Assembly: GCF_006345805.1 (NCBI RefSeq)
Contig: NC_043006.1
Location: 17,856,001-17,920,000 of the forward strand
DNA from: Octopus sinensis
Lineage: Eukaryota
Length of the DNA stretch: 64,000 nt
Direction: 5' to 3'
A program made the translations under genes and the position numbers. The notes beneath the pieces are model-generated. The model had not been told where the DNA came from. It made no database searches and saw only the letters and a program-made list of their open reading frames with translations. Of the stretch, positions 10,170-64,000 are shown piece by piece; the first letter of the stretch is position 1, and each line of letters starts with the position of its first letter.

Positions 10170-10211
<42 letters not shown>

Positions 10212-32767: not shown

Positions 32768-32932
32768 GTAATATTGGGTATCTTTTTACCACCATACATT
32801 CTGCTGCTAGAATTTAAAAGCAAAGAAGAACTGCTGTTGATGCCTCAGACAATGGAAGAACATTTGGATGACATGGAAGAAGAAGCAAGTGAGAATGATC
32901 GAGTCTCCATCAGTTCTTTTGATGAAGCTGAA
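32768..32932 (+). CDS. TRPM: TRPM coding exon (VILGIFLPPYILLLEFKSKEELLLMPQTMEEH...)
   Basis: catatag acceptor and gaa|gtgagt donor; 165 nt; FKSKEEL..MPQT.EEH motif as in invertebrate trpm. Confidence 0.95.
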
Positions 32933-34655: not shown

Positions 34656-34755
34656 TTTATTGGTAACTTCCCAACAATAGCAATTTTCAATAAATTCATT
34701 GAGTTAATCAAATTTTAATAACTGACTAAAGATTATTTCTGTTTTTATTCTGCAG

Positions 34756-34974
34756 AATGAATATGGAGAAGATATTGATAATAATTCCATTGGAAGTACA
34801 ACTGTACCAGCACCACCGCCAACAGCAATCAATAAAGACGTGGATGTGCTATCTAATGCACTTCATCCTATTACATTCCCAGATAAACCACTGAAGAAGA
34901 AATCACCTTTAAAACCTGGGAAGAAACTCTATGAGTTTTATAATGCACCTATAACAAAATTCTGGGCACACACT
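34756..34974 (+). CDS. TRPM: TRPM coding exon ending KKLYEFYNAPITKFWAHT
   Basis: ctgcag acceptor and act|gtaagt donor; 219 nt; FYNAP..KFW motif that precedes S1. Confidence 0.95.
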
Positions 34975-35434
34975 GTAAGTATATATTTTCTACAGCCTTC
35001 ATTCATCATCATTGTCATCATTTTAGTGTTCACTTTTCTGTGCTTGCATGGGTCAGACAGAGTTTAGTGAGGCTGGTTTTCTATGGCCAGATGCCCTTCC
35101 TGTTACTAAGCTTCACCTGTTTCCAAGGTAAGGTTATATTGCCTCATGGCCGAGCATGATCTTCACAGAAGATTGGAAGTGAACGACACTGCTTGTATGA
35201 CAGTGACACTTGTTTACGACTATCACATGCTGTCAAGACAAGGAGACTCAAACAAGCACACATACTATGGGCTTCTTTCAGTTTCAGTTTCCAAAATCCA
35301 CTCACGAGTTTTTGGTTGGCATGCACTATTTGAGAAGACATTTGCCCAAGGTGGCAGTCAGTGGAACTGGACCCAGAGCCATGGAAATTGGGAAGCAAAC
35401 TTCTTAATCATATGGCTATGCTTGTTTGCATCTG

Positions 35435-42459: not shown

Positions 42460-42588
42460 ATTTCTTATATGACATTCCTGTTTTGTTTCACATATATTGT
42501 GTTATTAAGAACTTTACCAGTGCCACGCTGGCAGGAGTATTATGTTATTGCATACATCGGAACTCTTGCATTAGAAAAGATGCGCATG
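42460..42588 (+). CDS. TRPM: TRPM coding exon for S1-S2 (ISYMTFLFCFTYIVLLRTLPVPRWQEYYVIAYIGTLALEKMRM)
   Basis: Long polypyrimidine tract ending ttcag; atg|gtaagt donor; 129 nt, phase 0/0; QE..VI.YI...EK.R motif. Confidence 0.94.
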
Positions 42589-43110
42589 GTAAGTATCACT
42601 TCTTTTTCTTCTTTCCATTTCTTTATTTTCTGATTCCCTACATAATGGTACCTGTTACTGTTGTTGTCTTCTTTTCTTCATCATTATCTTATTATCAAGA
42701 TGGCAAACTGGCAGTGTGGTTAGCATTCCGACTGAAATGCTTAGCAGTATTTCATCTGTCGATATGTTCTGAGTTCAATTTCCACTGATGTTAACTTTAC
42801 CTTTCATCCTTTTGGGGTCAATAAAAGAAGTACCAGTTGAGCACTAGAGTCGATGTAATTGATTCATCCCCTCCCCCCAAATGGCTGCTGTTGTGACAAA
42901 ATTTGAAACCATTATTATTATCCACACCAGGTGAAATGCTTAGCTGTATTTCATCTACCTTTACATCAGCTTTGCCTTTCATCCTTTTGGGATCAATGAA
43001 ATAAGTATCAGCCAAGTACTGTAGTCAATGTAATGAACTTAACCTTCCCCCAATATTCCAAGCCTTATGCCAATAGTAGAAAGGTTTATTATTATTATTA
43101 TTATTATTGA

Positions 43111-43445
43111 GTGAGAGAGTAGTGCATGCCATCAAAGTGACACTGGGGTAAAATATATGAAGCCCAGTATACCCATCATGACAACCCGTCTGATAAGGGT
43201 ACACCAGGCACATGCATCACAACCATATGTGCACGACATGGTGATCTCATATCAAGATAAACAGCACATGACCTTGCAGGTGAGGCCCAGTTATAATTTT
43301 CTTCTGGTTGAATAGCCCATCCCACTCAAAAGGTCCCTGAATAAGGGTTGTTTAAGGGTGTTGAACGAAACACCCATGTTTCCAGAAGTGAATTATTCAA
43401 ACTCCAAAGAATCATGGCTATGATGCTCCCCCACTACTTCTGCTT
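43111..43445 (-). mobile_element. Unclassified retroposon 3' end with an (AAT)n tail
   Basis: GC-richer block ending gcatgcactactctctcactcaataataat on the minus strand, between SINE C copies. Confidence 0.55.
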
Positions 43446-43459
43446 ATTATTACCACTAC

Positions 43460-43498
<39 letters not shown>

Positions 43499-43699
43499 AT
43501 AAAGGCAGCAAGCTGGCGGAATTGTTAGCACGCCAGGCAAAATGCTTAGCGGCATTTCATCTGTCGCTACATTCTGAGTTCAAATTAGGCCAGGACCAAC
43601 TTTGCATGTCATCCTTTCAGGGTTGATAAATTAAGTGCCAGTGAAACAATGGTGTCGATCTAACCAACTAGTCCCCTCCCCCAAATTTCAGGCCTTATT

Positions 43700-43856
43700 A
43701 TTCTGTTGTGTCTGGGGTGAGTCATTCTCTTTTGGTACCTTATAATTTAAGACACTCACCGGTAAAATTTCCACTTATTTCTTTTTTATTTTTCTAAAAT
43801 TTTTGTTGCATTTTGCAACCTTTTCAATAGTTTTGAGTCAAATCCAAAAGCGAAAT
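43700..43856. mobile_element. Family D element, copy 3 (large internal deletion)
   Basis: Left arm joined directly to the ...caaatccaaaagcgaaa terminus. Confidence 0.75.
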
Positions 43857-44276
43857 TATTATTAATAAGGTAGCATAATGTTTTGAGGAGTGAGGCACCA
43901 CCCTTTAGCCACTGATGATCTCAAGTCTACTTGACCTGGAGTAGTAGCACTTGTTAGGGTCCTAGCTATGGGTTAATAGCATATGTACCACCTACTCCAA
44001 ACCCAGTCTATGACTTTTCCAATAATCAATGGTGACTTGGTCAGGAAATCCTCTGTGATGGTCAACAATCGTTGACAAGTTGATATGCTATGGATCACAC
44101 TATACCAAAGTGTGTATGCATGTTATCAGGGACTACATGTGAACTTGTATTCCTGCTGAGGCTGGCTGTCAGATGTAGTCAGCAGTCGTGAGGGACATGG
44201 TGAAGTTTGTCAGAGCTGGGTTCAACCCACTCAGTGTGACTGCTGTCACAAGAACAAGTACTTGTATCTATATATA

Positions 44277-44489
44277 CAAGGAAGTGCTGAAAAGTTCCTG
44301 GCTTTGGGTAGAAGAAAATACAGGAGGATCAGTTATAATTTCATTCAGCACATTCTCCTCTCAGATTCACACACTTATCGCAATGATCCTTCAGGTTTTC
44401 TTAACCCTGTAAAAGAACTCAGAAGGCCGGGTTTCCAACCAGGCCTTTTGCGATATCCTTAAAGCCGGGAACTTTTCAGCACCCCTTCG
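44277..44489 (-). mobile_element. Mariner-derived MITE (second copy)
   Basis: TA-caaggaagtgctgaaaagttcctggcttt ... aaagccgggaacttttcagcaccccttcg-TA. Confidence 0.88.
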
Positions 44490-45757
44490 TACGCATGTTT
44501 GTCTTGACCCCCAACTTGATATAACATGGTGTTAGTAAATAAGCATCACCCTCATATAGGCAGTGTTGTTTGCTTCAGTCTTCTGTGAAAAAACCTGTCT
44601 GGCCATGGGGGAAATATTACCTTACTTAGGTGCAAGTGAGAGTTGGTGATAGGAAGGGCATCCTACCATTGAAAATATGTCTCACCAAATTCTGTTTGAC
44701 CCATGCAAACATTAAAAAGGTGATGATGGTGGCAGCGACGACACTGACGACGATATAAGAGATTCATTATTTTTCTTTTTGAAAACAAAATCATTTTCCA
44801 AAGAAAAATATTTTTTATTTAAGATAAACAATTATAAAGCATGTAAATAAATCAAATAGAAAAACTGCATGAACATTATTTTTGTGTATATAGTAAATAT
44901 TATGTTTATATTTCAATAATAATTAAGTTGTTCAAAATACATATATTATGAACTATTTAGGAGGGATTGCAATTCTGATTGGGAAGAAACAAACACACTC
45001 ATAAATGAATGCATGAAACCCATTACACACACACACACACACACACAGAAACAGACAGACTAACACACAAGTACAGGTGGAGGCATGGCTGTGTGGTTAA
45101 GAAGTTTGCTTCCCAACCATGTGGTTTCAAGTTCTGCCCAAATGTGTGGCATCTTAAAAAAAATGTCTTCTACTATATAACCTTTGGCCAACCAAGGCCC
45201 TGTGAGTAGATTAGGTTGATGGAAACTGAAAGACACCTGATGAATGTGTGTGTCCCTTGTTTTTGAGATCACATGCTGGTGTTAAATGATTCTTACTGTC
45301 ATACAAATAGTGTCACTCTTTTGCAATCTTCTGTGAAAACATGTCCAGCAGTTGTATTGTTCATATCTGAAGGTTAAGGGGAAATATCACCATCTTTGAA
45401 AACGGGTAGGTTGCCCATGGGAAGGATATCCAACCGCAGGAAATCTGCCAAATTTTGTCTGACCCATACAAGCATGGAAAAGTGGATTTTAAGGGAATGT
45501 TGATCACGTTTAAGGTCCACTTTTCCATATTTGCATAGGTCAGATGGCCAGATGCCCTTCCTCTCTCACCAACCCTCACCTTGTTCCAAGCATGCTAAGA
45601 TTTCCCTACAGTCAGACATGTTTTTCACAGAAGATGGAAATGAACAGTATCACTTGTTTGATGGTGGTGATAGTCACTTAGAACCATCACAAGTTGTCAT
45701 GTCAAGGGGTACATACATACACACATGTATGTGTACATATATATGTATGTATGTATA

Positions 45758-46059
45758 TCACGTGACCAACCAGGCTATCAGATGTTGCTACACATCGCTG
45801 GTCACAATGCGCTTCGCATTGTTTTAGCCTTCAAATGACACCACCCCACTGGCTAAGTGAGCAGGCCAACAGAAGAAAGAGTGAGAGAAAGTTGCGGCGA
45901 AAGAGTACAGCAGGGATCGCCACCATCCCCTGTCGGAGCCTCGTGGAGCTTTAGTTGTTTTCGCTCAATAAACACTCACAATGCCCAGTCTGGGAATCGA
46001 AACTATGATCCTATGACCGAGAACCCACTGCCCTAACCACTGGGCCATTGTGCCTCCAC
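45758..46059 (-). mobile_element. tRNA-derived SINE of a separate family
   Basis: Head ggcccagtggttagggcagtggg...gtttcgattcccagactggg with A- and B-box-like motifs, followed by a unique body. Confidence 0.8.
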
Positions 46060-46790
46060 ACACATATATGAAAAGTGTGTAGAGTGTTGTCTTCTTAAAA
46101 AGATGAGGTTTCAGCTGCACAGGATTTCCTTGATTGTGTTTCCAAAAATCAATGGAAATTGCTGTTGTGATACTAGGGCCGGTGGCATGTAAAAGAACCG
46201 TCCGAACGTGGCCGTTGCCAGCGCTGCCCCAACTGGCCTCCATGCCGGTGGCACATAAAAAGCACCAACCGATTGTGGCCGTTGCCAGCCTTGTCTGGCA
46301 CCTGTGCTGGTGGCACATAAAAAGCACCCACTACACTCACGGAGTGGTTGGCATTAGGAAGGGCATCCATCTGTAGAAACACTGCCAAACCAGACTGGGC
46401 CTGGTGCAGCCTCTTGGCTTCCCAGACCCCCAGTCGAACCGTGCAACCCATGCTAGCATGGAAAGCGGACGTTAAATGATGATGATGATGTGTCAAGGAA
46501 GATGAAAACCGTTTGAAAATAGTCATACAAATGATTGCTGTCTCTCAAAGGACTATTCAGTGCCATTGCTGATCTGAATGGTTAGACGTATAGGTGACAG
46601 ACAAAAATTGTTACTTCCTCTATATTGATAAGATAACTTGTGAGGGATAATCCTTATGAACCACTGTATGTCTTGTAAAATTGACTTGCGAGCCCTTTCA
46701 CACACACCATCATTATGATTATCATCTTTCATACTTGTTTCAGTCATTGGGTTGGAGCCATGCTGAGACACTGCGTTGGAGGGTTTAGTC

Positions 46791-47461
46791 CAGTGGTTCT
46801 CAGACAGGTTCCATATGGCCTCTGAGGGTCCATATAAGATTTGTAGTGGGGTGATTGTTACCTGCGTCACCTTGCTGGCACTTGTGCTGGTGGCACATGA
46901 AAAAACATTCGAGTGAGGTCATTGCCAGTGCCGCTGGACTGGCTCCTGTGCAGGTGGCACATAAAAAGCACCATTTGAGTGTGGCCATTGCCAGTACCAT
47001 GTAAAAGCACCCACTACACTTTTGGAGTGGTTGGCACTAGGAAGGGCATCCAGCTGTAGAAACTCTGCCGGATCAGATTGGAGCCTGGTGCAGCCATCTG
47101 GTTCGCCAGTCCTCAGTCTAACCATCCAACCCATGCTAGCATGGAAAGTGGACGTTAAACGATGATGATGATGATGATGATGTGGGGTCACACAACGAAA
47201 TAGTAGATTGTGAATCTGCAATATTTTTTTTAAGGGCCCCTAGATGTATATATTGGTATGTATTGCACGAAACAGCCAGGTTTCTTTCTCTAACATTTTA
47301 CATAGTTCAACCTACACAAGTTATTGTGTGAAAAACAGAATAGGAATTTTGAAAGAAGTATATATAAAACTGATATTTAAACATTGACTGGCTATGGAGA
47401 TCCACCAGAATCAAATGGTAATTAAAGGGAACTAGAGATAAGAAATGATTGAGAACCTCCA
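46791..47461. mobile_element. hAT (Charlie-like) MITE interrupted by a family B repeat
   Basis: cagtggttctca / ttgagaacctcca ends; 8-bp TSD gtttagtc / atttagtc. Confidence 0.7.
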
Positions 47462-47799
47462 ATTTAGTCAAACAAATCAATCTCTGTACTTCTATTGGAG
47501 CCTCCTACTTATTCTGTTGGCCTGTTTTGCAACACTTCTAAGGTACTGCAATGTTAACAAATGAACATTAGTTGTAGGGTACTGTTGGGGGAACAAACAC
47601 ATATATAGAAATATGTGTGTATGTTGAGGACAAACTTACAGTTAATGTCTACTGAATTTCCTCCCAAGGCATTTGTTGAATCAAGGTTGTAGTAGAAGAC
47701 ATTTGCCCAAGGTGCCACACAGTGGGAGTGAACTGAAAACCACATGGTTGGAAAGAGACTTTCTTAACCACAAAGCCATACCTGTATTTATATATTATT

Positions 47800-48260
47800 T
47801 AAATCCATAAGTTTTTGTGTGTGTGTGTGTGTGTGTGTACACATATAAATATACATGCTTATATATATAGACATATATTGATATATACACTTTTATATTT
47901 ATAAATATGTATACACGCACATATACATATATCTACTTAGAGTGATATGTATGTATATACACACACACATATATACATATACACACACATGTACATTTAT
48001 GTAAACATTTATATATACACATATATATATATTTATATATATGCCTTCATATATATGTGTGTGTTCATACACACACTAATATAGATTTAAATGCATGTAG
48101 ATTTACATTTACACACACAAACACACATAAATATATATACATATATATACACACACATACACATATATATAAATATGTGTGTGTGTGTGTGTGTGTACAT
48201 AGGCACACTCATATAATATACATATATAGATATGTACTTATGTGTGTGTGTGCTTTGTAC
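47800..48260. repeat. Compound TA/CA/TG microsatellite field
   Basis: ~460 bp of mostly alternating purine-pyrimidine sequence. Confidence 0.9.
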
Positions 48261-48568
48261 TTGCGTAGGTATATATACTTGGAAGCCCTATCAACAAAGA
48301 TTGTCAGTTGATATAACAAGAATTGTCATCAAGTTTAGCAGTGTGTAGCTGTTGTAGTTAATCAGTTGTATAAATGTCAACTACCTACAAGACACTTCTT
48401 GCTTCCTTTGTTGGGAAATAGCCCAAAACAAAAGTAGTGGTATTTTAACCAATATCCATATGCCAAAAGCATTTCAGTTTCATATCCACTATGTTAAAAA
48501 TATCACTTTAATTTCTATGATACATAAATGGATGGGATTTTTTTTCTCAAATTCAAATTCAATCATAT

Positions 48569-48606
<38 letters not shown>

Positions 48607-48615
48607 GTTTTATAT

Positions 48616-49032
48616 CTCTTTCTCTCTTTTCTCTTTTACTTGTTTCAGTCATTTGACTGCGGCCATGCTGGAGCACCGCCTTTAGTCGAGCAAATCGACC
48701 CCGGGACTTATTCTTTGTAAGCCCAGTACTTATTCTATCGGTCTCTTTTTGCCGAACCGCTAAGTGACGGGGACGTAAACACACCAGCATCGGTTGTCAA
48801 GCAATGCTAGGGGGACAAACACAGACACACAAACACACATACATATATATATATATATATACATATATACGACAGGCTTCTTTCAGTTTCCGTCTACCAA
48901 ATCCACTCACAAGGCATTGGTCGGCCTGGGGCTATAGCAGAAGACACTTGCCCAAGATGCCACGCAGTGGGACTGAACCCGGAACCATGAAGTTGGTTAG
49001 CAAGCTACTTACCACACAGCCACTCCTGCGCC
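48616..49032 (-). mobile_element. SINE family A, near-consensus copy
   Basis: Reverse-complement copy that retains its CpGs. Confidence 0.9.
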
Positions 49033-49712
49033 TATATCTTAAACATTTTTGTTATTTTTTTTTAACTCTTATAAAAAAACACATACCAAAAATGTTACAA
49101 ATATTTACATTGATAAAAAAAAAATAGTAACCATAGTAACAGTTGTTTTAATAAATTATTTATGATAATATAACAATTATATAATTGATAGTCATCACAA
49201 AACAAGAACAACAAAACTATCAATTTAAATAGCGTTCTTGGTCTGTAGTTCTTGAGCCATGCTACAAATCCATCATTGTACTCAAGACACAAAAGCCCAT
49301 TCCTTAGTTTTGGTAATTTGGTTATAATCTTCCAACTCCGGCAGTGAACACTGAAAACATTCATAAATCAATGTTTAATGTTATACAGACCTGCTTTCTC
49401 TTCTCTGAGTTTAATGGTTTATTAAGTTGATTCATTTTTGAAGTAATAATTCTTCCCATGATGACAACAATGTGTTTTTTTTTTGTTTTTGTTTTTGTTT
49501 TTTTTGGCAAAAATGTTTAAATTTTTTTTATTGGTGTTCATGGCAATAAATAACAGCTATTTCACCTAGTTTTTTTTCCTCCTTTTAGTATCTCGGCTGG
49601 ATGCGTAATTTGATGAAGTGTTCTGTTGCACGTTTGAAGTTTTGAGAGTTGATTGTGTCTCAACTTGTTCTTCTTTGTCTCTTTCTTCCTATTTTCTTTA
49701 TTGGAATTGGAT

Positions 49713-49752
<40 letters not shown>

Positions 49753-51915
49753 AACACATGCACACACGCATGCATGCACACACACACACACACACATGCA
49801 TATATAAAGAACAAACACAATATGGAAAGCACACCTACAACTTAGAGGTAGCAAAAAGAGAACCAACGCAATCTTGAAAACTGTTTCCTATTTATGGTCA
49901 CATGATAGAAATTGAGGCTTGGATCAATGTTATGCAGATGTGTGTATAATGAGGAAAGAAAATCCCCCAACATGTTTATATAATGATGAAAGGATAAAGC
50001 CACATGATTCTGATTTTCAAATGGAAAAATAAGGTTCCTAATTTTTGTATCTTTTCCAAATGGATTTAGTTTAATTAAGCAAGCGGTTATTCGATTATTG
50101 TTAAAACACAGAAACTTCTGCCACGATTTTCTGTAGAGAAATTGTTAATGGAGATAATGTACAAAATTTTAAATAGGATTCAAATTCTGAAACAATTTTC
50201 CAGCAAATTGAAACTAAAGAAGCTGCAAATGTCTTAAGATTCTGTATTTATGTTCCATGGAAATTGTATGAAGACAATTTTGGAGAAGACCCGATTCACG
50301 TATTATTGCTTTAGCTGTGGCACTAAACTAGAAATAACTCTGGAACTGTAATGGTTGTTTTATATTTGTGTTTCTTTTTGGTAATTGCATTAAGATTTGG
50401 TGATTTACTTTCTGTTAGATTTTGTAGAGCAACCAGTCATAAGCCAAACAAGCATATTTGATTGAGGAATTTATTTAACCCTTTAGTGTTTAAACCGGCC
50501 ATACCAGGCCAAAATTGTCTTCCTGTTATATGCTCAAACCAGCCAGCTCTGACCTCTCACACCTACCCTACAAAGTCATTCTAAAAATAAACAGGGACAT
50601 CATCAAAATCTCAGAGTTACAAGATGCTGTACAATTAATTTTAAACAATGTGATTAAACAGGTTTTACATTTGACAGAGTAATCTGAATGCTAAAGGGTT
50701 AATTATTTATCTATTGCTAATTTTGGTTTATGCTTACTTATTTTTATTTCTAATGTGTTTCCTTTATGTAAATTATCAGATTATTCCCTTAACCCCTTTT
50801 GTTACTATATTTCCATTGAAATCTATTGCTTTTGTTTCAATTAATTTTTAATGAAGAGTTTATCAAAATAACTCCCTTGTTATATATCTGATGCTTGGAG
50901 CATAAAGTAACATGAAATTTTCATGGAAGGTTTTTACTTTAGATCACTTTAAAACAGAAAGTTTGTATTGTAGAAACTGATTGGTTGGTTTCAGAAGGAT
51001 TATGCTTATATATATTTCATTGATATTTATTGTTTCTACTCATGATTAATTACAAAAAAAAAAAAAAAAAAATTAACTTTCTAATTCTCTTTTTAATTTG
51101 AGAAAGTATGAAGTTGCTCTTTTTCTAGATGATACATTCATTATTCTAAAAACGGCATATAAAAATGAATTGCTTTATTATTTTATCTCCGTGTTTATCT
51201 ATTTATTATAGTTTAATTAAATCATAAATGGTGTTATTTTCAGCTTTCGTTCAGTCTTTTTTCATTATTATTTTGTTTTAAAGAGGATACAAAAGCAGTT
51301 TTTTTAATTGTAAAAATTAAATATTATTTTTCATTAGGATCATTAAATTTTAACCTCCACCTCACGCCAAGCTCATTTTTCACCATTTCACATTATGGAA
51401 ACCGTGACATATTTAACTAGAAATTTTTATCTTAGCAGCCATCTAGTAATTGCTTCTTATGAAGATGATTATAAAGAGAACCAATTTCATTGAAAAATAC
51501 AGCAAAAATTTGTGACAGTGTAGAGTGACTACTTAATGACATTCTCTGATTGATATTCAAAATTATATTATTATTTTTTATAAATCTTTGTCTCTTATCT
51601 TTTGATAATGTTTTAGGATATAAAATAAATCTTTCTCAGTTGATTTCATTTTAGAATTAATTCAATGAAATAATCATGTTTTCCATTAACTTGTGAATAA
51701 TGTTGTTTAAAAAGAATTATGTCTTGTTTTATATTACTCTTGAATTATTGACAAAGATTGTTTAGAAATTTATCCACGCTGTATAATTCCTACTCTACAT
51801 AACTCTGTATGTTTCTATAATTCTTACTCTGAAACTATTGTAAAATATCAGTCATTATTTTCGGGGTGAGGTGGTCATCTCTTTTGTGTTTGCATTCTAA
51901 AGTCAAGTTGTTGGT

Positions 51916-53025
51916 TTACTGGCTGCGTTTGTAAACTATTTGTATTTTGTGTTGTTCCATGAGTGGATGTGCACTGTCATTGTTGCTGGCCTTGAAAACA
52001 ATTATCTGACGGTGCTTCTTCTGGGATTTGCAGCAGAATAACTTTTTTAATTCTATACGGAAAAGTCTGCCAGTTAAACAGTAGAGAAAGAAGTTGATAG
52101 CATGGTTGATGTAAAGAAGAATGTAACTGAGTACTCGTAAGAGTATGGCCTCAGCCAGGCTTTCTAAGTCCTTCCTGGATTTTTTAGTGATGGAAGTGAG
52201 GGTGTTAGGAACTGTTGTGAAAATCCATACAAAGGAAATAGTTAAAAGAATGACTGCAAGTCGGCGGTGTATGCTTCGCATGTGTTGATCGTCCTTTGTC
52301 ATGGCACTTTTCAATGTTTCACGATGCTTCAGTAAGCAGAATATGATGAGCAGGTTCAATATAAGAAGTAGAACAGAGGGAATCACAGAGAAGAGGACCA
52401 TGTTGAACCATGGGAAATAAACACAAATTTTGATCATTTTACTTGTGCATTCTAGTTTGTCAGGGCTCTCGGGGTTGTCAGTACTTACTAGTTCTGCTGT
52501 CCAAAAGAAATGTGAGTTGAGCAATAGAAATACTGTGACAATCGTAGCAGTAACAATTTTGACTCGACGGAAACTGCACATGCCGTTCGCGCGCAAAGGA
52601 AACCAAACCGCCAGGAACCTTTCTGCAGTCACTGCTACAATCAACCAGGCAGATATATGTAAGGAAGAGTTTATAATAAATATTATTACTTTACAGCTAA
52701 AGACAGAAACGTGTAAGAGTTCTATGTAAGACCACATACGAATCCATGTCTTGAGACCACTTATTAGGAGGAATACAGTGTCCGAGATTGCCAGCATGGC
52801 AAGGTAAAAAAAAGTCGATGTTCTTCGTAATTTACGTTTCATCCAAATGATGAAACTGAGAATGTTCCCTATTGTTCCCATGATAATTATCACTGGAAGA
52901 ACATAGATGAGGATGGAAATTGAGATTTGGTAGGCTTTGATCTGCTCAAGTTGTTTTTGGCTGAGAACTGTTGTCTCGTTAGCCCAAGTGGGTAGTGTGT
53001 ATGTCATGTTGTCACTCAGGGACAT
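51916..53025 (-). CDS. Class A (rhodopsin-family) orphan GPCR, FMRFamide/peptide-receptor-like, 369 aa, single coding exon, nested antisense in a TRPM intron
   Basis: Seven hydrophobic segments; TM1 GN, TM2 LAISD, TM3 ERF, TM6 TTVP, TM7 NFFLY; TM3 and ECL2 cysteines; N-glycosylation sequons NMT and NET; helix-8 FR..L..LFCC; ATG at 53025 with A at -3; no stops or frameshifts. Confidence 0.94.
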   Translation of the reverse strand: MSLSDNMTYTLPTWANETTVLSQKQLEQIKAYQISISILIYVLPVIIIMGTIGNILSFIIWMKRKLRRTSTFFYLAMLAISDTVFLLISGLKTWIRMWSYIELLHVSVFSCKVIIFIINSSLHISAWLIVAVTAERFLAVWFPLRANGMCSFRRVKIVTATIVTVFLLLNSHFFWTAELVSTDNPESPDKLECTSKMIKICVYFPWFNMVLFSVIPSVLLLILNLLIIFCLLKHRETLKSAMTKDDQHMRSIHRRLAVILLTISFVWIFTTVPNTLTSITKKSRKDLESLAEAILLRVLSYILLYINHAINFFLYCLTGRLFRIELKKLFCCKSQKKHRQIIVFKASNNDSAHPLMEQHKIQIVYKRSQ

Positions 53026-53068
53026 ATTGATGTCTTCCCACTTCGCTGTGTCCGGCTCCAGTTTGGTG

Positions 53069-53125
53069 TTATCTTGCAAACAGGTTACGAATCATCTACA
53101 AGATAAAATTAAAATATAGATTAAA
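53069..53125 (-). promoter_or_regulatory. 3' splice site of a GPCR 5'UTR intron followed by a short uORF (MIRNLFAR*)
   Basis: Minus strand reads ttttaattttatcttgtag|ATGattcgtaacctgtttgcaagaTAA; uORF 53095-53069 is out of frame with the GPCR. Confidence 0.55.
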
Positions 53126-54501
53126 ATAAATATCAAATGGAAATTGTAGTTGTGATACCTGTGTCGGTGGCACGTAAAAAGCACCATCCAAATGTGGCCG
53201 AAACCAGTGCCGCCTTGACTGGCTTCTGTGCCGGTGGCATTTAAAAAGGACCAACCGATCGTGGCCATTGCCCGCCTCCCCTGGCACCTGTGCCGGTGGC
53301 ACGTAAAAAGCACCCACTACACTCACGGAGTGGTTGGCATTAGGAAGGGCATCCAGCTGTAGAAACACTGCCAGATCAGACTGGAGCCTGGTGCAGCCTC
53401 CTGGCTTCCCAGACCCCGGTCGAACCGTCCAACCCATGCTAGCACGGAAAACGGATGTTAAACGATGATGATGAGATTACAGGTGATGTTCTCTATTAAA
53501 TAATTATTGTCATAACTAATCAATCACGTTTCACTTTAAAATTACATTCATGTTGGTCCTATTGAATATCTTTTACTACTATTTACTATAGTTTTAACTG
53601 CAACCTGTTCATTGGCATATAATTGCATGCACAATTTTTCATCAGTATGCAAGGTCATAGTTTTGAGCAACAAAATTTTGACATCATATTAATTATTAAT
53701 TATGTTTAATTGGAACATAATTAATAAAAAATGAATGTGACTTTATATATTGATATGTTTTTTAAGTCTTGAATATGGCTTTATATAATGTTTTAATTCT
53801 TACATATAGCTTTTAGATAGCCTCTGAGTACTTGGCTGTGTAGTTAAGACACTTGCTTTGCAAGCATGTGGGTTTGGGGTTCAATCCTACTGTTTTCTGC
53901 CATAGCCTTCTGAGTTGAAATTCATACATGAATAATGTGTGGAAGTAATTCGTGTGTGTGTGTCAGCCCCCACCCCACCCCAACTGGCTCCTGTGCCGGT
54001 GGCACGTAAAAAGCACCATCTGAACGTGGCCAATGTCAGTGCCACCTGACTGGCTCCCTTACACTCTCGGAGTGGTTGGCATTAGAAAAGGCATCCAGCT
54101 GTAGAAACATTGCCAGATCAGATTGGAGCCTGGTGCGACCTCCTGGCTTGCCAGTCCCCAGTCAAACCGTCCAACCCATGCCAGCATGGAAAACGGACGT
54201 TAAACGATGATGATGATGATGATTTGTGTTATCGATATTGACCATAAGTGAGTGCTTTACAATAAAAAAAAAGTCCCTTTAGATATTTGTTCTGTATTTT
54301 TACACATGCCTTTGTCACTGACATGATCATCATCAATAGTATTGTAAACCAGTGATTAGCTTGCTTGAAATCTTTAACCAATTTTGCCATTGCTCATTTG
54401 CAATATAAAATGAATAAAAAACAAAATGAATACAATGTGATGTAGCATCTTTTTTGCCATTGGGTAATAAATAATGTAGTGAAAGACAACTATAAACTAT
54501 A

Positions 54502-54891
54502 CTAGCAGTATTGCCCGGCGTTGCTCGGGTTTGTTTCAACCCTTTAGAATTGGAATTTTTGAAAAGTAAAAATTTTGCATTATGTAGCTTGTTATTCTCT
54601 TTAAGTGAATATTTTTCTGGTTGAAATGCACCAAAAAATGGTGACACAGCTGTCAAAAAATCGTAAAAAGTAGGGATTTTCATAGAAAAAAAGCACCTTT
54701 TTGATGTAAATAATTTTTCGTCTTAACATGGTCCGATTTGAATTCTATCTTCTACAGAAGGAAGAGCAAGCCTTCTTCTATTATACTCTCAATTTTGGTC
54801 AATTTGCGCCTCTGGGTCTCGGAGGAGATAGTGTTAGTTGAAGGCTACCAAACCTGCCACACACAGACAACTTCAGCTTTATATATATAGA
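54502..54891 (-). mobile_element. Non-autonomous Helitron
   Basis: Minus strand starts TCtatatatataaag and ends with hairpin cccgagcaacgccggg followed by CTAG|T; smaller relative at ~56997-57120. Confidence 0.78.
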
Positions 54892-55261
54892 CTTTAAAAT
54901 GTTGGTATTGGTTATGTCTTGTTGCTCTATATCATATTATCATGTATTGTTATATCTCTATATGTATCTATACTCTGTAATCAGCTCTGTAATTACTGCA
55001 GTTCACTGATATTTACCAACACCAATTGGTAAAATGTTTACACAACCATATAAATTGTTGAAGATAAAAGATTATGAATATAGAACATAGTAATATATGA
55101 AAGAAATTCAATATAATCGATGGAATTATCTCTGATGTTTTGGAAAATACATTAAATGCTCTGGAGCATCAGAAACAATTCCACTCACAAAGAGGGACCG
55201 AAAATCAGTTTACTCAATTCATAATCGTTATAGTTTACAAGATCTTATTATTAGTATTATT

Positions 55262-56060
55262 GTTGTAGTGGTGAGCTGATAAAATTGTTAACATTGTCAG
55301 ACAAAATGTTGAAAAGCATTTCTTGGGGTTCTTTACATTCTGAGTTCAAATTCCACCACGTTCAATTTTGCTTTTCATGCTTCCAGAGTTGATAGAATAA
55401 GCACAAGTTGAGCACTACTCAATGCAACTGGCTAATCCCCTCTCCTTAAGAATTGCTGGTCTTGTGTCAAAATCTGAAACTATCGTCATCATCATCGTCG
55501 TCATCATCAAAGGTGGTGAGCTGGCAGAATTATTAGCACACTGGACAAAATGCTTCACAATATTTTGTCTGTCTCTATGTTCTGAGTTCAAATTCTGCTG
55601 AGGTCAACTTTGCCTTTCATCCTTTCGGGGTTGATAAATTAAGTACCAGTAGAACACTGGGGGCGATGTAATTGACTAGTCTCCTCCCACCAAACTTCAG
55701 GCTTTGTGCCTTTAGTAGAAAGGATTATAATAAAGTTGGCGACAAAATGCTTTGCAACATTTTGTCCATCTGTATGTTCTGAGTTCAAATTCCACCAAGA
55801 TTGACTTTGCTTTTCATCCTTTCAGGGTTGATAAAATGAGTACTAGTTGAGCACGGGATGGGGGGGGGGGGGTCAATGTAATCGAGTAGCTGCCTCCCCA
55901 CAAAATTTCAGGCCTTGTGCCTATAGTAGAAAGGATTATTATTATTATTATCATTATTAAAGCAGCAATTTTGGTAGAATTGCTAACACATCAGACTAAA
56001 TGCTGAATGGAATTTCTCCTATCTCTTTATGTTCTGACTTCAAATTTGCCTTTTCTCCTT
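55262..56060 (+). mobile_element. Four head-to-tail SINE family C copies separated by (ATC)/(ATT) tracts
   Basis: Repeated ttctgagttcaaattc...tttcatcctttc units in one orientation. Confidence 0.8.
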
Positions 56061-56688
56061 AACTTTCGTTTTTCTATTGCTTGCATGAGTCGGATGGTTT
56101 AATGGAATCTGCAGAGTTAAGAGCACTGTGCTATGCTCCAACATCTACTTTAGCATGGCCTCTGTGACTGGATGCCCTTCCTAACACCAGCCAGTTTACA
56201 GAGTTTGCTGGATTGTTATTTTTAACTTGAAAAATTTTTTTAAAATTGACTGAATGAGAGTATAGTAGAACAGGTTTATGCTAGGTATTGAGAGGTTAAA
56301 TTATAGTAGAAGGAACAGAAACAGGCTTCTTGCTGTTGAGGGGATGCTTGGCTACCTCACATTATATAGGGGTTAAAGAGAGTAGTCAGGATGGAGCTGG
56401 AAAAATAAAGATGGTAGTGACAAGGTGTCAGAGCATGCCCTCAAGATACAAGATACAAGAAGGTGGATAGAAGTGAATGTGAGAACAGAAGATCAAGAAG
56501 AGTAAGTAAAGATTGCGAGAGATGGGGTAAGGGTGAATGTAGTGAATGGTCAACAAGAGGGACGGTCAGTGGTGAATATGAGTTGGAGGCAAAAGCAATA
56601 GGGATGGACATCATTGATAAACAGTAATTCTCTTTCTTTCTCTCTCGCACACACACATACACTCACACACACACATATATATATATTA

Positions 56689-56833
56689 TATAGAGGGCAT
56701 TACTATACATAAATGCCACACGCTAGGAGGGACTCTTAAAGTAAAAAACGATGTGTTTATTTATTTTGGTAGTTTTGACTTTCAGAGTCCCTCCTAGCGT
56801 GTGGCATTTATGTATAGTAATGCCCTCTGTATA
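56689..56833. mobile_element. Foldback MITE with ~48-bp TIRs
   Basis: tagagggcattactatacataaatgccacacgctaggagggactct is mirrored; a solo related end lies at 21626-21672. Confidence 0.9.
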
Positions 56834-59800
56834 ATATAAATAAATATATTTAAGTGAAAAAAAATTGGTGGATTTTTTTCTCTTATGAGGTTTTTCACGC
56901 TAACTACTTGATAAATTCTTATAAAGATTTTATCCTGTTTATAAATTGTATATACATATATATATATCTTTGTGTATGTGTGTGTGTGTGTGTATACTAG
57001 CAATGCACCCCAGCGTTGCTCAGGTGTTATGACCTACAGCCCCATTGTATTATCTGTTCCTTTCTTATGGGCAGAATCAGCACACTAGAAGTTTGAAGCA
57101 AACAACTCTTCTCTATATACATGTTTCTCAGTCATTTTCTGATGAACAACACTGCTGTTTCCATCTACCAAATTCAGTCACAAGTCTGTGGTTGGCCTAG
57201 GGCTATAGTAGAAAACACCCAAGGTACCCTGCAGAGGGACTGAACATGGAACCATGGGGTTGGGTTGGGAAGCAAACTTCTCAACCATACAGTCATTCTT
57301 GCACCTAATATGTGTGTGTGTTTACATTTGTTGTTAAATTGAGTATTATGCCTCTCTATATCTCAAACTTAGCAGTTCATCAAGCAGAGATCTATAAAGT
57401 AAATGCCAGATTGAAAATATGTATTGAGGTCAGTATGATCAATTAAATTTTTGAAGGTGATACCCCATCATAGCAACAGTCAAAAGACTAAACCCAATAA
57501 AATAATGTTTAAAGACTTAATGGCTTCAAATTTAAGGTAATGGATTACTAACCACAAGATAATGTGCTTCAAAACTTTGTACTGAACTCCCATTCTATAC
57601 AATAGCACTATATGTACATCTCAGTCTACTTGACTTCCAACAATTATCAATTGCAATTTGAAGTTGAATGGTTAGCAGTAAGAAAGATGTCCAAATTTCT
57701 TTAAAAATTATTGTGCAAAATATTCTGAGAAAAAGTATTTTATTCACCACAACAAAACACACACACTCAGAGTTGCCTCCCTTAACTTAAGACCTCAAAA
57801 TTGTGCGACCTAACCTTGTTTTTGAGATTAGTTTTGTAGTAAAAAAAACATACTTTATTTGGTTGTCAAAAGATTACTGAATTTTTTGATTCTTCATACG
57901 TCAAAATTGGCAACTCCGTTTTCGAATCCATAAGGAACATACGCGCGCACACAAACTCTATTTCATTATATAAGATATATATATATATAAATAAAATCAT
58001 CATCATCATTTAGCATCTGTTGTCCATGTTGGCGTGGGTAGGGCAGTTTGACCAGGGCTGATTTGGCATGGTTTCTACGATTGGATGTCCTTCTTAATGC
58101 CAACCACTCCAAGAGTGTAATGGATGCTTTTATGTGCCACCAGCATGAGTGCCAGTTGCATGACACCAGTAACTACCATGTGTGTATGTGTGTGTATGTG
58201 TATAAGAGAGAGAGAGAAAGGAGAGAATTAGTGCTTATCAAATTTTATTTACAAAGTATTAGTCGGGCTGCAGATGTGGTAGAAAACCCTTACTGAAAGT
58301 GCTGCATGTGAGATTGGATCTTGAACCGCATGCTCAGGAAGTGAAATTCTTAGCCACCCAGCCATGCTTGCTAACATCCAATGGTAGCTTAAAATATATT
58401 AAATTATATTCTTTTATGGCACTGACTCAAAACCTGTAATTCTGGATTATTGATTCTTATTCCCAACAATTAAATATTCATATTGAATATGTATTACTAC
58501 AACCGATCCATAATCTGAAATAAATCTGTGAAACTGACCCCAGTGGCAGTGGTATAGAACTGGCTATGTATGTCATCAACTGGACTTTTCCTGGAACTGA
58601 AAATTTATAGCTTATCTCCCTATATACGTAAGGGACTCACTCTGACCTATTAGATAGTTCCATCAAATCTGAACAGAGAATCAAAGAATGAAAGCAAAAA
58701 AAAAATATCAGTATAACAATGCAAGTGTAGTTATATATATAATATCAATAGAAGTAGATCTTTCCATCAAATTTATCATATTGTTACAATGCGATTTTGT
58801 ATTCATACTTTCCACAAATCTTTACTTTTGGGAGAGTGAGAAGGTAGGAAAGAGTGTGTGTATGTATGTTATTGCTACTGTAGAAAAGTACAAATGTTTT
58901 CAAATTGTTAGATTTGTACAAGTGTTGTTATATATCTGTTAAAACTGGAATAACATACTTAACCCCTTAACATTCACATTACTCTGTTGTCATCATCACC
59001 TCTTAACATCCACCTTCCATGCTGGCTTGGGTTGGAAGGTTTGACAAGGAGCCAGCCAGATAGAAGACTACACCAAGCTACTGTGTCTGTCAAATGTAAT
59101 AATTATTTATTCATATTGCTTTGAGAGAATCATGCATTATCTTGTTATAGCTTCAAGATTTCAATGATGTGATTGTTCACTTTTAAAATGACACTGTAGG
59201 GTAGGTGTGAGTGGTTGGATCTGGCCAGTTTAAATGTAAAACAGATAGAATATTTTGGCCAAATATGGCTGGTTTAGATTCTAAAGGGTTAAGTTTGTTT
59301 GACTTGCTTTTGTCTAAATTTACTTTAACAATTGGAAGACCCTGTGCCAGTGGCATGTAAAAAGCACCATCCGATCGTGGCTGTTTGCCAGCCTCGTCTG
59401 GCACGTAAAAGCACCCACTACACTCAAGGAGTGGTTGGCGTTAGGAAGGGCATCCAGCCGTAGAAACATTGCCAGATCAGACTGGGCCTGGTGCAGCCTT
59501 CTGGCTTCCCAGACCCCAGTTGAACTGTCCAACCCCTGCTAGCATGGAAAGCGGACGCTCAACGATGATGATGATGATGATGGTGATCACTGGAATACAC
59601 TATTATACTCTTTCCAGATTCGTACTGTTTCTGCCTTGGCCAATCCTTACCCTTGGTATGAAACTCCATGGTTCACCATTCACTGAGAGTAAGGGTGAAT
59701 TTACTGCATTCACCCTCACCCTCATCTCTAACCACCTCTCACTCTATCCCTGCACTCTAGCAAACTTTATGCACCGACCCTTCCTGATCAGCTATCCCAC

Positions 59801-59936
59801 ACACACACCCTTTCATTTATTTTCTTGCATCTTGAGGGTATGCTCAGACACTGCAATCACCACTGTTGTTTTATCTCTTTCTCGATGGAACATTAACTAA
59901 TATCACAATGTTAACTGTTTGAAATGTGTGCGTGTG

Positions 59937-60291
59937 TGTATTCTTTTATCTGTTTGTAATTTGACTGTGGCCATGCTGGAGCACCATCTTGAAGGGTTTT
60001 AGTCTGACAAATTGACCCCAGGATTTTTTTTTTAAAGCCTGGTTCATATTCTATTAGTCTGTTTTGCCGAACTGCTAAGTTACGGGGACAAACAGATACA
60101 AAGATACACAGACATGCACACACATATATATAACAGGCTTCTTTCAGTTTCCATCTACCAGATCCACTCAAGGCTTTAGTTAGTCTGAGGCTTTAATAGA
60201 AGACACTTGCCCAAGGTACCACCCAGTGGGACTGAACCCAGAACCATGTGGTTGGGAAGCAAGCTTTTTACCACACAGCCGTACCTGTGCC
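59937..60291 (-). mobile_element. SINE family A
   Basis: Reverse-complement copy. Confidence 0.8.
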
Positions 60292-60330
60292 TATCTATCT
60301 ATCTATCTATCTATATATATATATATATAT

Positions 60331-60577
60331 AAAATCACCATCTCATCATTGAATGTCCATTTTCCATACTGGCATGGGTTGGATGGTTTGACAGGTGCTG
60401 GCCACCTGGAGAGCTGTCTAGGCTCCAACTGTCTGTTTTGGCATGGTTTCTATAGCTGGATGCCCTTCCTAATGTGAATCACTTCCTAATATGTGCTGGG
60501 TGCTTTTGTGTGCTACCAAGCATGACTGCATCCTACATAGCACCAGCACAAGTACAATTTATGTGACACAGGCACAA

Positions 60578-60641
<64 letters not shown>

Positions 60642-60884
60642 CACCATCTCATCATTGAATGTCCATTTTCCATACTGGCATGGGTTGGATGGTTTGACAG
60701 GTGCTGGCCACCTGGAGAGCTGTCTAGGCTCCAACTGTCTGTTTTGGCATGGTTTCTATAGCTGGATGCCCTTCCTAATGTGAATCACTTCCTAATATGT
60801 GCTGGGTGCTTTTGTGTGCTACCAAGCATGACTGCATCCTACATAGCACCAGCACAAGTACAATTTATGTGACACAGGCACAAA
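60331..60884. repeat. Tandem duplication of a 248-bp segment bounded by (TA)n
   Basis: 60331-60578 and 60637-60884 appear identical. Confidence 0.92.
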
Positions 60885-61989
60885 TATATATATATCTGAA
60901 ATGTACTCTTGGAAAGATAAATTGGTGACGCATACCTTTCAGAGTCTCTTTTGAGCTCACCAAGAATTGCTTAACACATCCAAAATTGGGAAAATTAATC
61001 TTCAAACAATCATGCTGAGAACAACAAGCATTTATGATATATCTACATTCTTTCCAAACCTACCAAATATTCATCAAAATTTTTTTATCAATATAATATA
61101 TTTGTTAGTTCTCATTTTACCTAAAAGGATTTCTTATCTAAACTAAATAACAACGATGATAATATATGTTTATTCAAAATTTCTGTTTTTCTTTAAATCG
61201 ATGATGTTTCGTAGTAGATTCAAATGTAATCTTGAATATTTTCCCATATATTTTCTTATCCAAGATAAGTGATATGTTTTCTAGATGTTTGTTTTAAGGT
61301 TTCCGCAGAGATGTAACTGCTGAGTAAAATTGGAAAAAGAATAAAAACTGAAAATAGTTGTATTTTAAAGTTAAATGCTCTCAGTAAATTCTCTGTTTGT
61401 TCATTATTTGTTAAGAAGGGGTGAAAAAAAGGTTTATTTTTCAAATAATCATAGTTTTGTATGAATTCTGTTGTCATGTTAATTAAAATAGGTTTCTTGT
61501 CCTTGATAGAATATTTTATTTAATCATGTGAAATTATTTTTCTTTGTATCCTTTATAATAATCTGAATTAATAAAAAAAAAAAAAGAAAAATTCAAAACC
61601 GATATGCTAGGGCAGTAAGGTTGGCAGAATTGTTAAAGCATCAAGGAAAATGCCTTTCTGTATTTATTCTAACTGTTTACGTTCTGAGTTCAAATCCTGC
61701 CAAGGCCAGCTTTGCTTTTCATTTCTCTGAGGTTGATAAAACAAAGTATTAGTGGCTTACTGGATTCAATAAATCATCAATCCACACCCCACCCAAAATT
61801 CAAGATGCATAAGAATATAAATTTTAAGTAATTTTCATTTATTTAATTGCTACTCTAAATGTGCATAAATATATAAAATATTTTGATAAAATAGTTTTAA
61901 AATACTTGCAAGATAAATTTTTGCTTGTCTGTACAACTTACTATATTCTGGCATAACATTTGCTAATGTTCATTATATATGTCATTTCT

Positions 61990-62405
61990 TGCTTACTCTT
62001 TACTCTTTTACTTGTTTCAGTCACTTGACTGTGGCCGTGCTGGAGCACTGCCTTTTAGTCAAGCAAATCGACCCCAGGACTTATTCTTTGTAAGCCTAGT
62101 ACTTATTGTACCGGACTCTTTTGCTGAACCACTAAGTAACACACCAGCATTGATTGTCAAGCAATGCTGGGAGGACAACCACAGACACACAAATATATAC
62201 ACAGGCACATACATATATATATATACATACATACATATATACGATGGGCTTCTTTCAGTTTCTGTCTACCAAATCCACTCACAAGGTTTTGGTCAGCCCG
62301 AGGCTATAGTAGAAGACACTTGCCCAAGGTGCCACACAGTGGGACTGAACCCGGAAGTATGTGGTTGGTAAGCCAGCTACTTACCACACAGGCACTCCTA
62401 CGCCT
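61990..62405 (-). mobile_element. SINE family A
   Basis: Reverse-complement copy. Confidence 0.85.
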
Positions 62406-62931
62406 ATGCTTAGTTTAATATAATTATTTCTCTGTCATACATTTTAAATGTTCATATTAAATGTTACCATATTTCTGTTGAAATTGATTGCAGATAATTT
62501 TGAAAATAATGAATGTTTTAGCAAAATAACTAAATTATTCATTATTAAACTGGTGTTCGAGACAAATAATAAATTTAGATGAAATTTGATGGATTTTAAT
62601 TTAGTTCCCTTTCACCCTTTTGTTACCTTATATCCATTGAAATGCATTGCTTTTTTTTTTTTTTTTGCTTCAATGACTTTTGAAAATAATGAAGAACTTA
62701 GTAAAATATCTTTGTCATTATTAAACTAGTATTTGGGGCATAAATTAACATGAAATTCTGACAGAAGGGGTTTTTAATTTAGGCACTTTTATGACAAAAA
62801 GTCTGTATCACAGAGTCTAGGGCAATCTCAGGTAGACAGGTGTCAAGAGTTATAAGCTTCTCTCGTTTCACATCATTCAGAGTTTTATACTGTATATTCT
62901 GGTCATATAGAACAACTTTCTTTCATTCCTT

Positions 62932-62978
<47 letters not shown>

Positions 62979-64000
62979 TATATATATGGTTGTGTATCCC
63001 AGTTTTAGAATGGGTTTTCTGTGTACATTGTAAGAAGTGAGTAAAGGAGTTGGTGATTGAAAGATCAACCAGCAGTAACATCTAGTACATACCAACATAG
63101 AAAAACACATAAAATGGTGTGTGTGTAATTTTTTCTAAGTGGTTGAATAGAAAAATGAATAGAAAGTATGAAAATAATTTTTTTTAATGTATTTATTGAG
63201 GACATCATCACCATCATCATCATCATTTAACATCCATTTTTCCATGCTGGCATGAGTCAGATTCTATATGGCCAGATGCCCTTCCTATTGCTAACTATCT
63301 CCTTTTTCCAAGCAAGGTAGCTATTTCCTCATGGCCGGGCATGGTTTCCATGGTAAACTGGAACCATTGCTTTTATGATTGTGATGCTCACTTACAACCA
63401 TCACTTGAGGTCAAGACAAAGGTACACACACACGTATATACGTATGCACATAGATTAAAGTAAAAATGAAAAAGCAAAATATTTGGCATAGACAATATTA
63501 ACATATATGAACTCTACATGTTTATATTCTCTATGTAAATTAAATGTCTTTCTTGAGTGGTGCCAAATGTTTTGCTTTTTAATTTTTACTTTTATTTACA
63601 TCTACATATCCAACAGGCTTCTTTCAGTTTCCATCTGCCAAATCCACTCACAAGACTTTGGTTGGGAAGCAAGCTTCTTCTTCACAATCATGCCTGTGCA
63701 CATTACAATAATTTTGAAAAGGCCACAAAAGAAACTGAAAGTAGTTGTGTGTTGTTCCATGATTTCATATCCCAAGTTTTTAATCATACATTTTCATTTG
63801 CTTCCCTGTTTCCTTTTATGCTGGTTTCCTTTCCAATATTTTGTCTGTATTCTCTGTTCTTCTATCTTGAGAATACACTCTGACACGTCATCACTGCTAC
63901 CATAGTCTTTTCAGCTACTCCCACCGTTATATAATGCAGGGTAGCCACATATCTCCTTCTGTGCCTGTCCCCTTTATCATACTTTAGTGTCTTGGCATGG

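Follow-up and report, generated by a model that had tools for sequence, protein, structure and literature searches.

In the genome of Octopus sinensis, a gene for an orphan G-protein coupled receptor (GPCR) lies antisense within a single intron of a channel gene of the TRPM family, and the same arrangement is found in a chiton, in two bivalves and in a second octopus species. The stretch of DNA in question (the window from here on) comprises 64,000 nucleotides of contig NC_043006.1 (NCBI RefSeq assembly GCF_006345805.1, positions 17,856,001 to 17,920,000 of the forward strand), and positions given without further designation are those of the window. The overall account that we consider likely is that the nest has been inherited from the ancestor of living molluscs and that its retention has been largely passive. 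The receptor gene and the constraint acting on it, the nest itself, the orthology of both partners and their common intron are shown by the sequences and annotations compared, while the manner of origin and the reasons for retention are argued from them below.

The nested receptor gene

The minus strand of the window carries an open reading frame (ORF) at 51916..53079, according to the ORF listing of the window, and its first ATG gives a protein of 369 amino acids (aa) at 51916..53025. A first-pass annotation, made from the letters of the window, had described a clean seven-transmembrane (TM) ORF of 369 aa, and this is borne out, at the same coordinates, by a match to the whole of the Pfam model 7tm_1 (PF00001; model positions 2-260 of 260, 68.8 bits, E=7e-19), for which the gathering cut-off is 30.5 bits, along with weaker matches to the nematode Srw, Srx and Srsx models. 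The DNA of the window is AT-rich (GC content 0.28-0.45) and repeat-rich, and the chance of a random ORF of such length anywhere in it is, as we estimate by our own arithmetic from stop-codon frequency, about 1e-7. The protein is 99% identical to an O. bimaculoides protein named 'probable G-protein coupled receptor 139' (XP_014787600/1, two RefSeq accessions for one identical protein), differing from it by 2 substitutions and 1 codon indel. The coding sequence (CDS) is 97.5% identical to O. bimaculoides chromosome CM046609.1, the identity across the intron being at ~88-93% (~90% for the surrounding intron DNA), and the comparison of the two species yields 26 synonymous and 2 non-synonymous differences (dS 0.115, dN 0.0023), so that the estimate of dN/dS that had been proposed as a check comes to an omega of 0.02.

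Orthologues of this receptor, at 40-50% identity, are found mollusc-wide, in chiton, limpet, periwinkle, scallops, oysters, mussels and clams, and a copy at least 90% identical is present in Argonauta. The alignment of ten mollusc orthologues contains 74 invariant columns, and the invariant positions include GN in TM1, LAxxD in TM2, the cysteines of TM3 and of the second extracellular loop (ECL2), ERF, FWTAEL in TM4, the tryptophan of TM6, NHxxNFxLY in TM7 and a C-terminal ...PLM motif. Among the microswitches, D82 in LAxxD, E135/R136/F137 (with R3.50 kept), C111 and C193 are all invariant, and so are N311, F312 and Y315 of the NFFLY motif that stands in place of NPxxY, the proline being absent. 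Both ERF (...VTAERFLAV...) and NFFLY (...AINFFLYC...) are legible in the octopus sequence, where the ERF/NFxxY motifs had been named before. Judging from this invariance, the variant microswitch motifs appear conserved, with no sign of degeneration.

A decaying processed pseudogene that is still open by chance would likewise consist of a single exon, and the location in a transposon-rich intron would suit such an origin. However, the frame is open, the omega of 0.02 reflects a large excess of synonymous over non-synonymous differences, the functional motifs are invariant and conserved across molluscs, and the identity to the Argonauta copy is high, all of which leaves this explanation with next to no probability; a pseudogene or a recent retrocopy is refuted by the substitution pattern in particular. 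The sequence comparisons argue instead for a real, intact and functional gene under strong constraint.

As to the kind of receptor encoded, a profile of the orthogroup, when compared to solved structures, ranks GHSR first (1e-28), followed by TRHR (3e-26), NMUR (1e-21) and NTSR1 (7e-20), with GPR139 behind all four (5e-17) and, in a single-sequence search, outside the best 60. The GPR139 identity suggested by the NCBI name is rejected on these grounds, and by its matches the receptor appears closer to the ghrelin and the thyrotropin-releasing hormone (TRH) receptors than to GPR139. It is best described as a class-A, peptide-receptor-like orphan, with ranked similarity as the basis of its placement near the ghrelin and TRH receptors. 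The orphan status was claimed already in the first-pass annotation, and the literature searches returned no report of deorphanisation for this receptor. Several of the lophotrochozoan receptor groups are still orphan (Thiel et al., 2021, PMC8557429).

The CDS is without introns in most species. In the chiton Liolophura (locus L008, 9869-10000), the annotated start of a 321-aa protein is preceded by ~130 bp with homology to the receptor, and a 397-aa version of the chiton receptor is found in transcript-like contigs (P0003); the Liolophura RefSeq model is probably truncated at its N terminus. The cytoplasmic tail (residues ~340-358, alignment columns ~450-490) keeps the pattern F-K-x-S ... D-S-x-x-P-L-M from chiton to octopus, and the third intracellular loop (ICL3) keeps MTKDDQ..R..HRRLA. 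These tail and loop motifs are candidate coupling or trafficking sites.

The host channel gene and its intron

The host gene is represented in the window by eight plus-strand TRPM exons, from 2977 to 42588, located by tblastn with full-length mollusc TRPM proteins (Table 1). Their translated identity to the O. vulgaris TRPM3-like protein, ~100%, and their consensus splice sites mark them as functional. One of them, 32138..32365, produced 751 TRPM-family matches in a phmmer search of 1.84 billion proteins, with PF25508 recorded on matching fragments. When concatenated and compared to PDB, the window exons match TRPM3 (5.8e-84), TRPM1 (1e-80) and TRPM7 (1.7e-70), the matches to TRPM5, TRPM4, TRPM2 and TRPM8 being at 1e-27 or weaker; as judged by these matches, the host is a TRPM1/3-type (alpha) channel gene.

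The last exon before the receptor (42460-42588) encodes the S1-S2 peptide ISYMTFLFCFTYIVLLRTLPVPRWQEYYVIAYIGTLALEKMRM and is flanked by consensus splice sites, with ttccttcag immediately before it and gtaagt immediately after it. In the annotated O. vulgaris protein (P0395), the sequence after EKMRM continues as VIAAEPVQLL..., and that sequence is absent from the window. No S3-S4 exon was found at 42.6-64 kb of the window, relaxed thresholds included, and none was found in the O. bimaculoides stretch that matches the window at 53-64 kb. With the S3 exon absent from the window, the host intron must exceed 21 kb, and the statement of the first-pass annotation, of an intron of at least 21 kb with no S3 before 64000, thus holds in the relaxed search as well. 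In the annotation of O. bimaculoides, a 1778-aa TRPM gene, with the domains LSDAT_euk, TRPM2, Ion_trans and TRPM_tetra, spans, on the opposite strand, the entire +-10 kb around the receptor. Taken with the window exons, this annotation places the guest wholly within one host intron, on the opposite strand; the antisense nesting in a TRPM intron following the S1-S2 exon, as originally proposed, is agreed upon by the exon, its splice sites and the O. bimaculoides gene model.

The nest in other molluscs

The most complete case outside the octopods is presented by the scallop Argopecten irradians, in which the receptor is antisense within a 1655-aa TRPM gene. At this locus (L003), an S1-S2 exon (17960-17829), homologous to the octopus exon 42460-42588, lies upstream of the receptor, an S3-S4 exon lies at 352-98, and the receptor itself, at 10001-11107, is in between; by these flanking exons the Argopecten intron is the same as the octopus intron. 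Another example is the clam Mercenaria mercenaria, with the receptor antisense within a 1692-aa TRPM gene, the length of which matches an independently retrieved TRPM3-like protein. The Mercenaria S3-S4 exon, which starts at the same boundary, before IIASEP, is the next host exon past the receptor in the direction of the channel. A third example is the chiton Liolophura sinensis, where, in the public annotation and at gene level, a 1739-aa TRPM gene spans the receptor locus on the opposite strand. With flanking exons seen on both sides in Argopecten, downstream in Mercenaria and upstream in octopus, the intron is the same S2/S3 intron, and the orientation is antisense in 5/5 species (chiton, scallop, clam and two octopus species). 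An absence of conservation had been named at first pass as the outcome that would speak against the proposal, and these five species have the nest. Weaker support comes from Saccostrea cucullata (498,513 bp), S. echinata, Dreissena, Littorina and Argonauta, in each of which the receptor and a TRPM3-like gene are on contigs of equal size.

A contig of 196,894 bp is reported in ENA both for an 80%-identical receptor and for a 97-99%-identical TRPM exon (proteins P0307 and P0121). These entries are probably one contig, of another cephalopod with the same nest.

Both partners form single orthogroups. The neighbour-joining tree of the receptor matches, the tree that had been suggested along with dN/dS, contains one mollusc clade, in which the cephalopods are followed by bivalves, chiton and limpet and these by a fast-evolving branch of caenogastropods. 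The neighbour-joining tree of 36 full-length TRPM proteins likewise contains one mollusc orthogroup, with a branching order that agrees with the species tree and with the hosts of octopus, clam and chiton among its members. As an orthologous receptor is antisense in an orthologous TRPM gene in a chiton, in two distant bivalves and in octopods, the nest would have been inherited rather than made in octopus, and it is probably about half a billion years old, dating to the first molluscs.

Could the same picture have arisen by convergence, through insertions of related intronless receptor copies into TRPM introns, or as an artefact of annotation in which unrelated genes are fused? The receptor CDS is intronless in most species, as retrocopies would be, and the chiton case comes from annotation. 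However, homologous flanking exons in scallop, clam and octopus show that the intron is one and the same, all five species agree in orientation, the receptor tree resolves one orthogroup, the paralogues and sister-clade receptors examined are not near TRPM exons, and host lengths agree with those of TRPM3-like proteins retrieved separately (in Mercenaria, 1692 aa), making either form of this explanation very improbable.

Outgroups, gastropods and the age of the nest

The TRPM orthologue of the brachiopod Lingula has an intron at the same S2/S3 position, of ~240 bp and empty, and no receptor is found anywhere in the 33-kb Lingula TRPM gene. The simplest reading of this short and empty intron is that the receptor was inserted into a pre-existing intron in the mollusc stem. 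The receptor would thus have entered an existing, short S2/S3 intron, and the insertion would fall between the split from brachiopods and that of chitons from conchiferans. No TRPM exon lies within +-10 kb of the receptor P0055 of Lineus or of the sister-clade receptors P0043 and P0057; all three are probably paralogues, and so they have little bearing on the presence of the nest outside molluscs.

Several observations weigh against the account of an ancient nest, passively retained. One TRPM copy of Biomphalaria (P0310) has an empty S2/S3 intron of ~0.8 kb, a result that applies to this copy, the one examined. In Patella caerulea, the receptor has neither a TRPM exon nor an annotated TRPM gene within +-10 kb. 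The chiton nest is known from the public annotation only, the +-10 kb around the chiton receptor being devoid of TRPM exons. Both trees, of the receptor and of TRPM, were built quickly by neighbour joining and carry no support values. Finally, passive retention is an argument and not a measurement, a conserved regulatory or functional link being the less probable alternative.

As to the first of these points, P0310 is, by the TRPM tree, the derived copy of a duplication specific to the snail group Hygrophila, for which reason a reading of its empty intron as loss of the nest in gastropods is rejected. As to the second, an S4-like tblastn match 1 kb upstream of the Patella receptor (E=0.09) was rejected, being on the wrong strand and without S3 context. 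The lineage-specific duplication of TRPM1/3-type genes is seen in the hygrophilan snails Biomphalaria, Physella, Bulinus and Lymnaea (P0166, P0348, P0354, P0352, P0353), and Biomphalaria has at least 3 TRPM1/3-type copies. No heterobranch orthologue of the nested receptor is among the best 120 matches.

The position of the S2/S3 intron is common to the TRPM1/3-type genes of brachiopod, gastropod, bivalve and cephalopod, while its length varies, from ~240 bp in Lingula and ~0.8 kb in Biomphalaria copy A to 17.5 kb in the scallop and >21 kb in octopus. Among the cases examined, the intron is long only where the receptor is present.

Retention of the nest

The pair is probably held together mainly by structure, as no inversion or translocation could separate the two genes without breaking the channel gene. 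Selection acts against rearrangements that break an essential host gene, so that a nest can persist with no functional link between its genes, and passive retention accounts for the data as well as a partnership would. The comparators Synapsin-Timp (PMC2330155) and LRRTM in alpha-catenin introns (PMC3933685) behave in this manner. The receptor's own promoter and untranslated regions (UTRs) would, in such a case, occupy a protected, repeat-free island in the intron.

TRPM1 and TRPM3 are the members of the TRPM family for which regulation by G proteins is known, with mGluR6 gating TRPM1 through Go in the retinal ON-bipolar cells and G-beta-gamma inhibiting TRPM3. One alternative to passive retention builds on this control and considers the receptor and the channel a functional unit, the two sharing intronic enhancers and the same sensory or neuronal cells, the receptor gating or inhibiting the channel via G proteins, and selection for co-expression keeping the pair together. 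The host being specifically of the TRPM1/3 type is in favor of such a unit, as are the strong constraint on the receptor and the maintenance of intron, orientation and orthology across chiton, bivalves and cephalopods, despite a gene order that is otherwise heavily reorganised in cephalopods (PMC9023564). However, antisense nested pairs can persist with no functional relation between the partners, and the receptor itself is the sole conserved element of the octopus intron, in tblastx comparisons with the scallop, clam, chiton and limpet loci; no non-coding element common to the classes is detected in the intron at the tblastx level. The Patella receptor, ~50% identical to the octopus one and with no TRPM exon within 10 kb, also hints, if inconclusively, at a function outside the nest. 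Such a unit is in our view unlikely, and we take the same sceptical position on the broader proposal of a hard-wired receptor-effector or either/or module, which selection would have maintained as one ever since molluscs arose, with shared intronic regulation and G-protein control of the channel.

Another alternative is a selected switch, in which transcription of the TRPM gene across the antisense receptor promoter, or the reverse, would make expression of the two genes mutually exclusive through transcriptional interference. The antisense orientation kept in all five species is consistent with such a switch, and so is the position of the receptor mid-way in a very long intron that polymerase must cross. 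Antisense is, however, the commonest orientation of nested genes in general. As the conserved nested pairs described before are likewise antisense (PMC2330155), the orientation alone carries little information, and a switch of this kind appears distinctly less probable than a receptor-channel unit.

Conservation of the nest is itself compatible with a unit, with a switch and with passive retention, and therefore it does not discriminate among the three. Retention with no functional partnership is the reading that we favor, and most of the remaining weight is placed with it.

Surroundings of the receptor gene within the window

By self-BLAST, 36% of the window recurs elsewhere in it, and the receptor is contained in an island free of intra-window repeats, 50988-53127, in good agreement with the stretch of ~51000-53140 that was first described as free of transposons. 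For ~1.2 kb past the receptor stop codon, identity to O. bimaculoides is at 94-96%, versus ~82-93% for the neighbouring intronic DNA, suggesting a 3' UTR. Upstream, the island is bounded by an element resembling a short interspersed nuclear element (SINE), at ~100 bp from the receptor ATG, that O. bimaculoides lacks at the orthologous site (a gap of 354 columns in the alignment) and that has related copies in the window at, for example, 20444-20725, 31600-31965 and 46173-46526. This element is a recent insertion, tolerated by the proximal upstream region of the receptor.

Table 1. Features of the window. Residue numbers and identities of exons refer to the annotated O. vulgaris TRPM3-like protein P0395, and exon limits, other than those of 32138..32365 and 42460..42588, are approximate limits of high-scoring segment pairs.
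Feature	Position	Strand	Evidence
Host TRPM exon	2977..3027	+	tblastn, P0395 residues 542-558, 100%
Host TRPM exon	7621..7752	+	tblastn, P0395 residues 559-602, 100%
Host TRPM exon	25987..26157	+	tblastn
Host TRPM exon	28223..28321	+	tblastn, P0395 residues 666-698, 100%
Host TRPM exon, in the region called TRPM2 (PF25508) by Pfam	32138..32365	+	tblastn, 99%
Host TRPM exon	32768..32932	+	tblastn, P0395 residues 775-829, 100%
Host TRPM exon, pre-S1 and start of S1	34753..34980	+	tblastn, P0395 residues 829-904, 97%
Host TRPM exon, S1-S2, last before the receptor	42460..42588	+	tblastn, O. vulgaris TRPM3-like residues 903-945, 100%
Host S2/S3 intron holding the receptor, at least 21.4 kb, continuing past the window end	42589..64000	+	lacks an S3-S4 exon
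Conserved 3' flank of the receptor, probably 3' UTR	50723..51915	-	94-96% identity to O. bimaculoides
Repeat-free island containing the receptor	50988..53127	.	self-BLAST, no intra-window repeats
Class-A GPCR CDS, single exon, 369 aa, stop codon at 51916-51918	51916..53025	-	ORF, Pfam, identity to O. bimaculoides, dN/dS
SINE-like repeat, species-specific	53128..53506	-	~20 related copies in the window; no Pfam match

On the minus strand at 53085-53100, ~70 bp upstream of the start codon, a polypyrimidine tract followed by AG (ttttatcttgtag, then atg...) resembles a splice acceptor. This acceptor-like site, along with the two RefSeq accessions for one identical O. bimaculoides protein, suggests that the gene may have non-coding, alternatively spliced 5' exons. 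Retroelement sequences are present in the window as well. At 21772-23280, on the minus strand and in an upstream TRPM intron, an intact 502-aa reverse-transcriptase ORF of a non-LTR (long terminal repeat) type retroelement is found (RVT_1, 2.6e-35). At 34279-34647, also on the minus strand, an ORF that combines a PHD/C1-like zinc finger with a reverse-transcriptase tail ends ~100 bp before the TRPM exon at 34753, and this ORF looks like a retroelement fragment.

Significance and comparison with known systems

Both genes are already annotated publicly, while the nest itself is apparently undescribed, and it joins the deeply conserved antisense host-nested pairs. Full-text literature searches found no paper describing the nest or its protein accessions, and a 2026 survey of TRPM evolution, which treats the intronic microRNAs of vertebrate TRPM1 and TRPM3, does not contain a nested GPCR. 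Deeply conserved protein-coding nests are rare, and this one unites families that signal together in vertebrates. It has outlasted the extensive reshuffling of cephalopod genomes, and it can serve as a clean marker of synteny by which the TRPM1/3 orthologue of molluscs is recognised. It also raises a testable hypothesis, that the orphan receptor and the channel are co-expressed or mutually exclusive, with one regulating the other. If the pair does act as a module, it would be the equivalent, in an invertebrate, of mGluR6-TRPM1, with the linkage itself as part of the mechanism. If there is no functional link, the pair would still illustrate well that the need to keep a host gene intact can by itself hold gene order fixed over about half a billion years.

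The receptor shares with the ghrelin (GHSR), TRH, neuromedin-U and neurotensin receptors and with GPR139 a class-A fold and a peptide-receptor-like sequence. Unlike these, it has ERF for DRY and NFFLY for NPxxY and is without the canonical CWxP, and the likeness shown is one of ranked similarity. The channel, in turn, is of the TRPM1/3 type, as are the channels regulated through mGluR6-Go and G-beta-gamma. In contrast to the mollusc pair, the vertebrate genes for such a receptor and its channel are unlinked.

The TRPM1/3 subfamily has served as a host before, as vertebrate TRPM1 and TRPM3 carry miR-211 and miR-204, respectively, in their introns (PMC13143021). In both cases the subfamily is the long-lived host of a conserved intronic gene, but the microRNAs are in the sense orientation and are processed from the host transcript, so that co-expression is built in, while the mollusc guest is an antisense protein-coding gene that needs a promoter of its own. 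The microRNAs are also in a TRPM intron different from the one that holds the receptor.

Another parallel is presented by the LRRTM genes, nested in introns of the alpha-catenin (CTNNA) genes of jawed vertebrates (PMC3933685). In that case, too, a mostly single-exon membrane-receptor gene is on the opposite strand within a large conserved intron, a single move in a stem lineage is thought to have placed it there, and later losses of host or guest have occurred occasionally. Unlike the LRRTM/CTNNA nests, which are vertebrate-specific and were multiplied by genome duplications, the mollusc nest is a single pair across mollusc classes.

Further comparators are the protein-coding overlaps kept between protostomes and deuterostomes, of which only three were found, all nested and antiparallel, Synapsin-Timp among them (PMC2330155). 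As with Timp, which is antisense in a synapsin intron from Drosophila to human, the mollusc receptor is encoded antisense within a single intron of a neuronal gene, and both nests have been passed on through hundreds of millions of years. The two nests differ in the gene families involved and in depth, the mollusc pair being of phylum level (absent in Lingula) and not of bilaterian level, and, unlike synapsin and Timp, the GPCR and TRPM1/3 families have a known signalling relationship.

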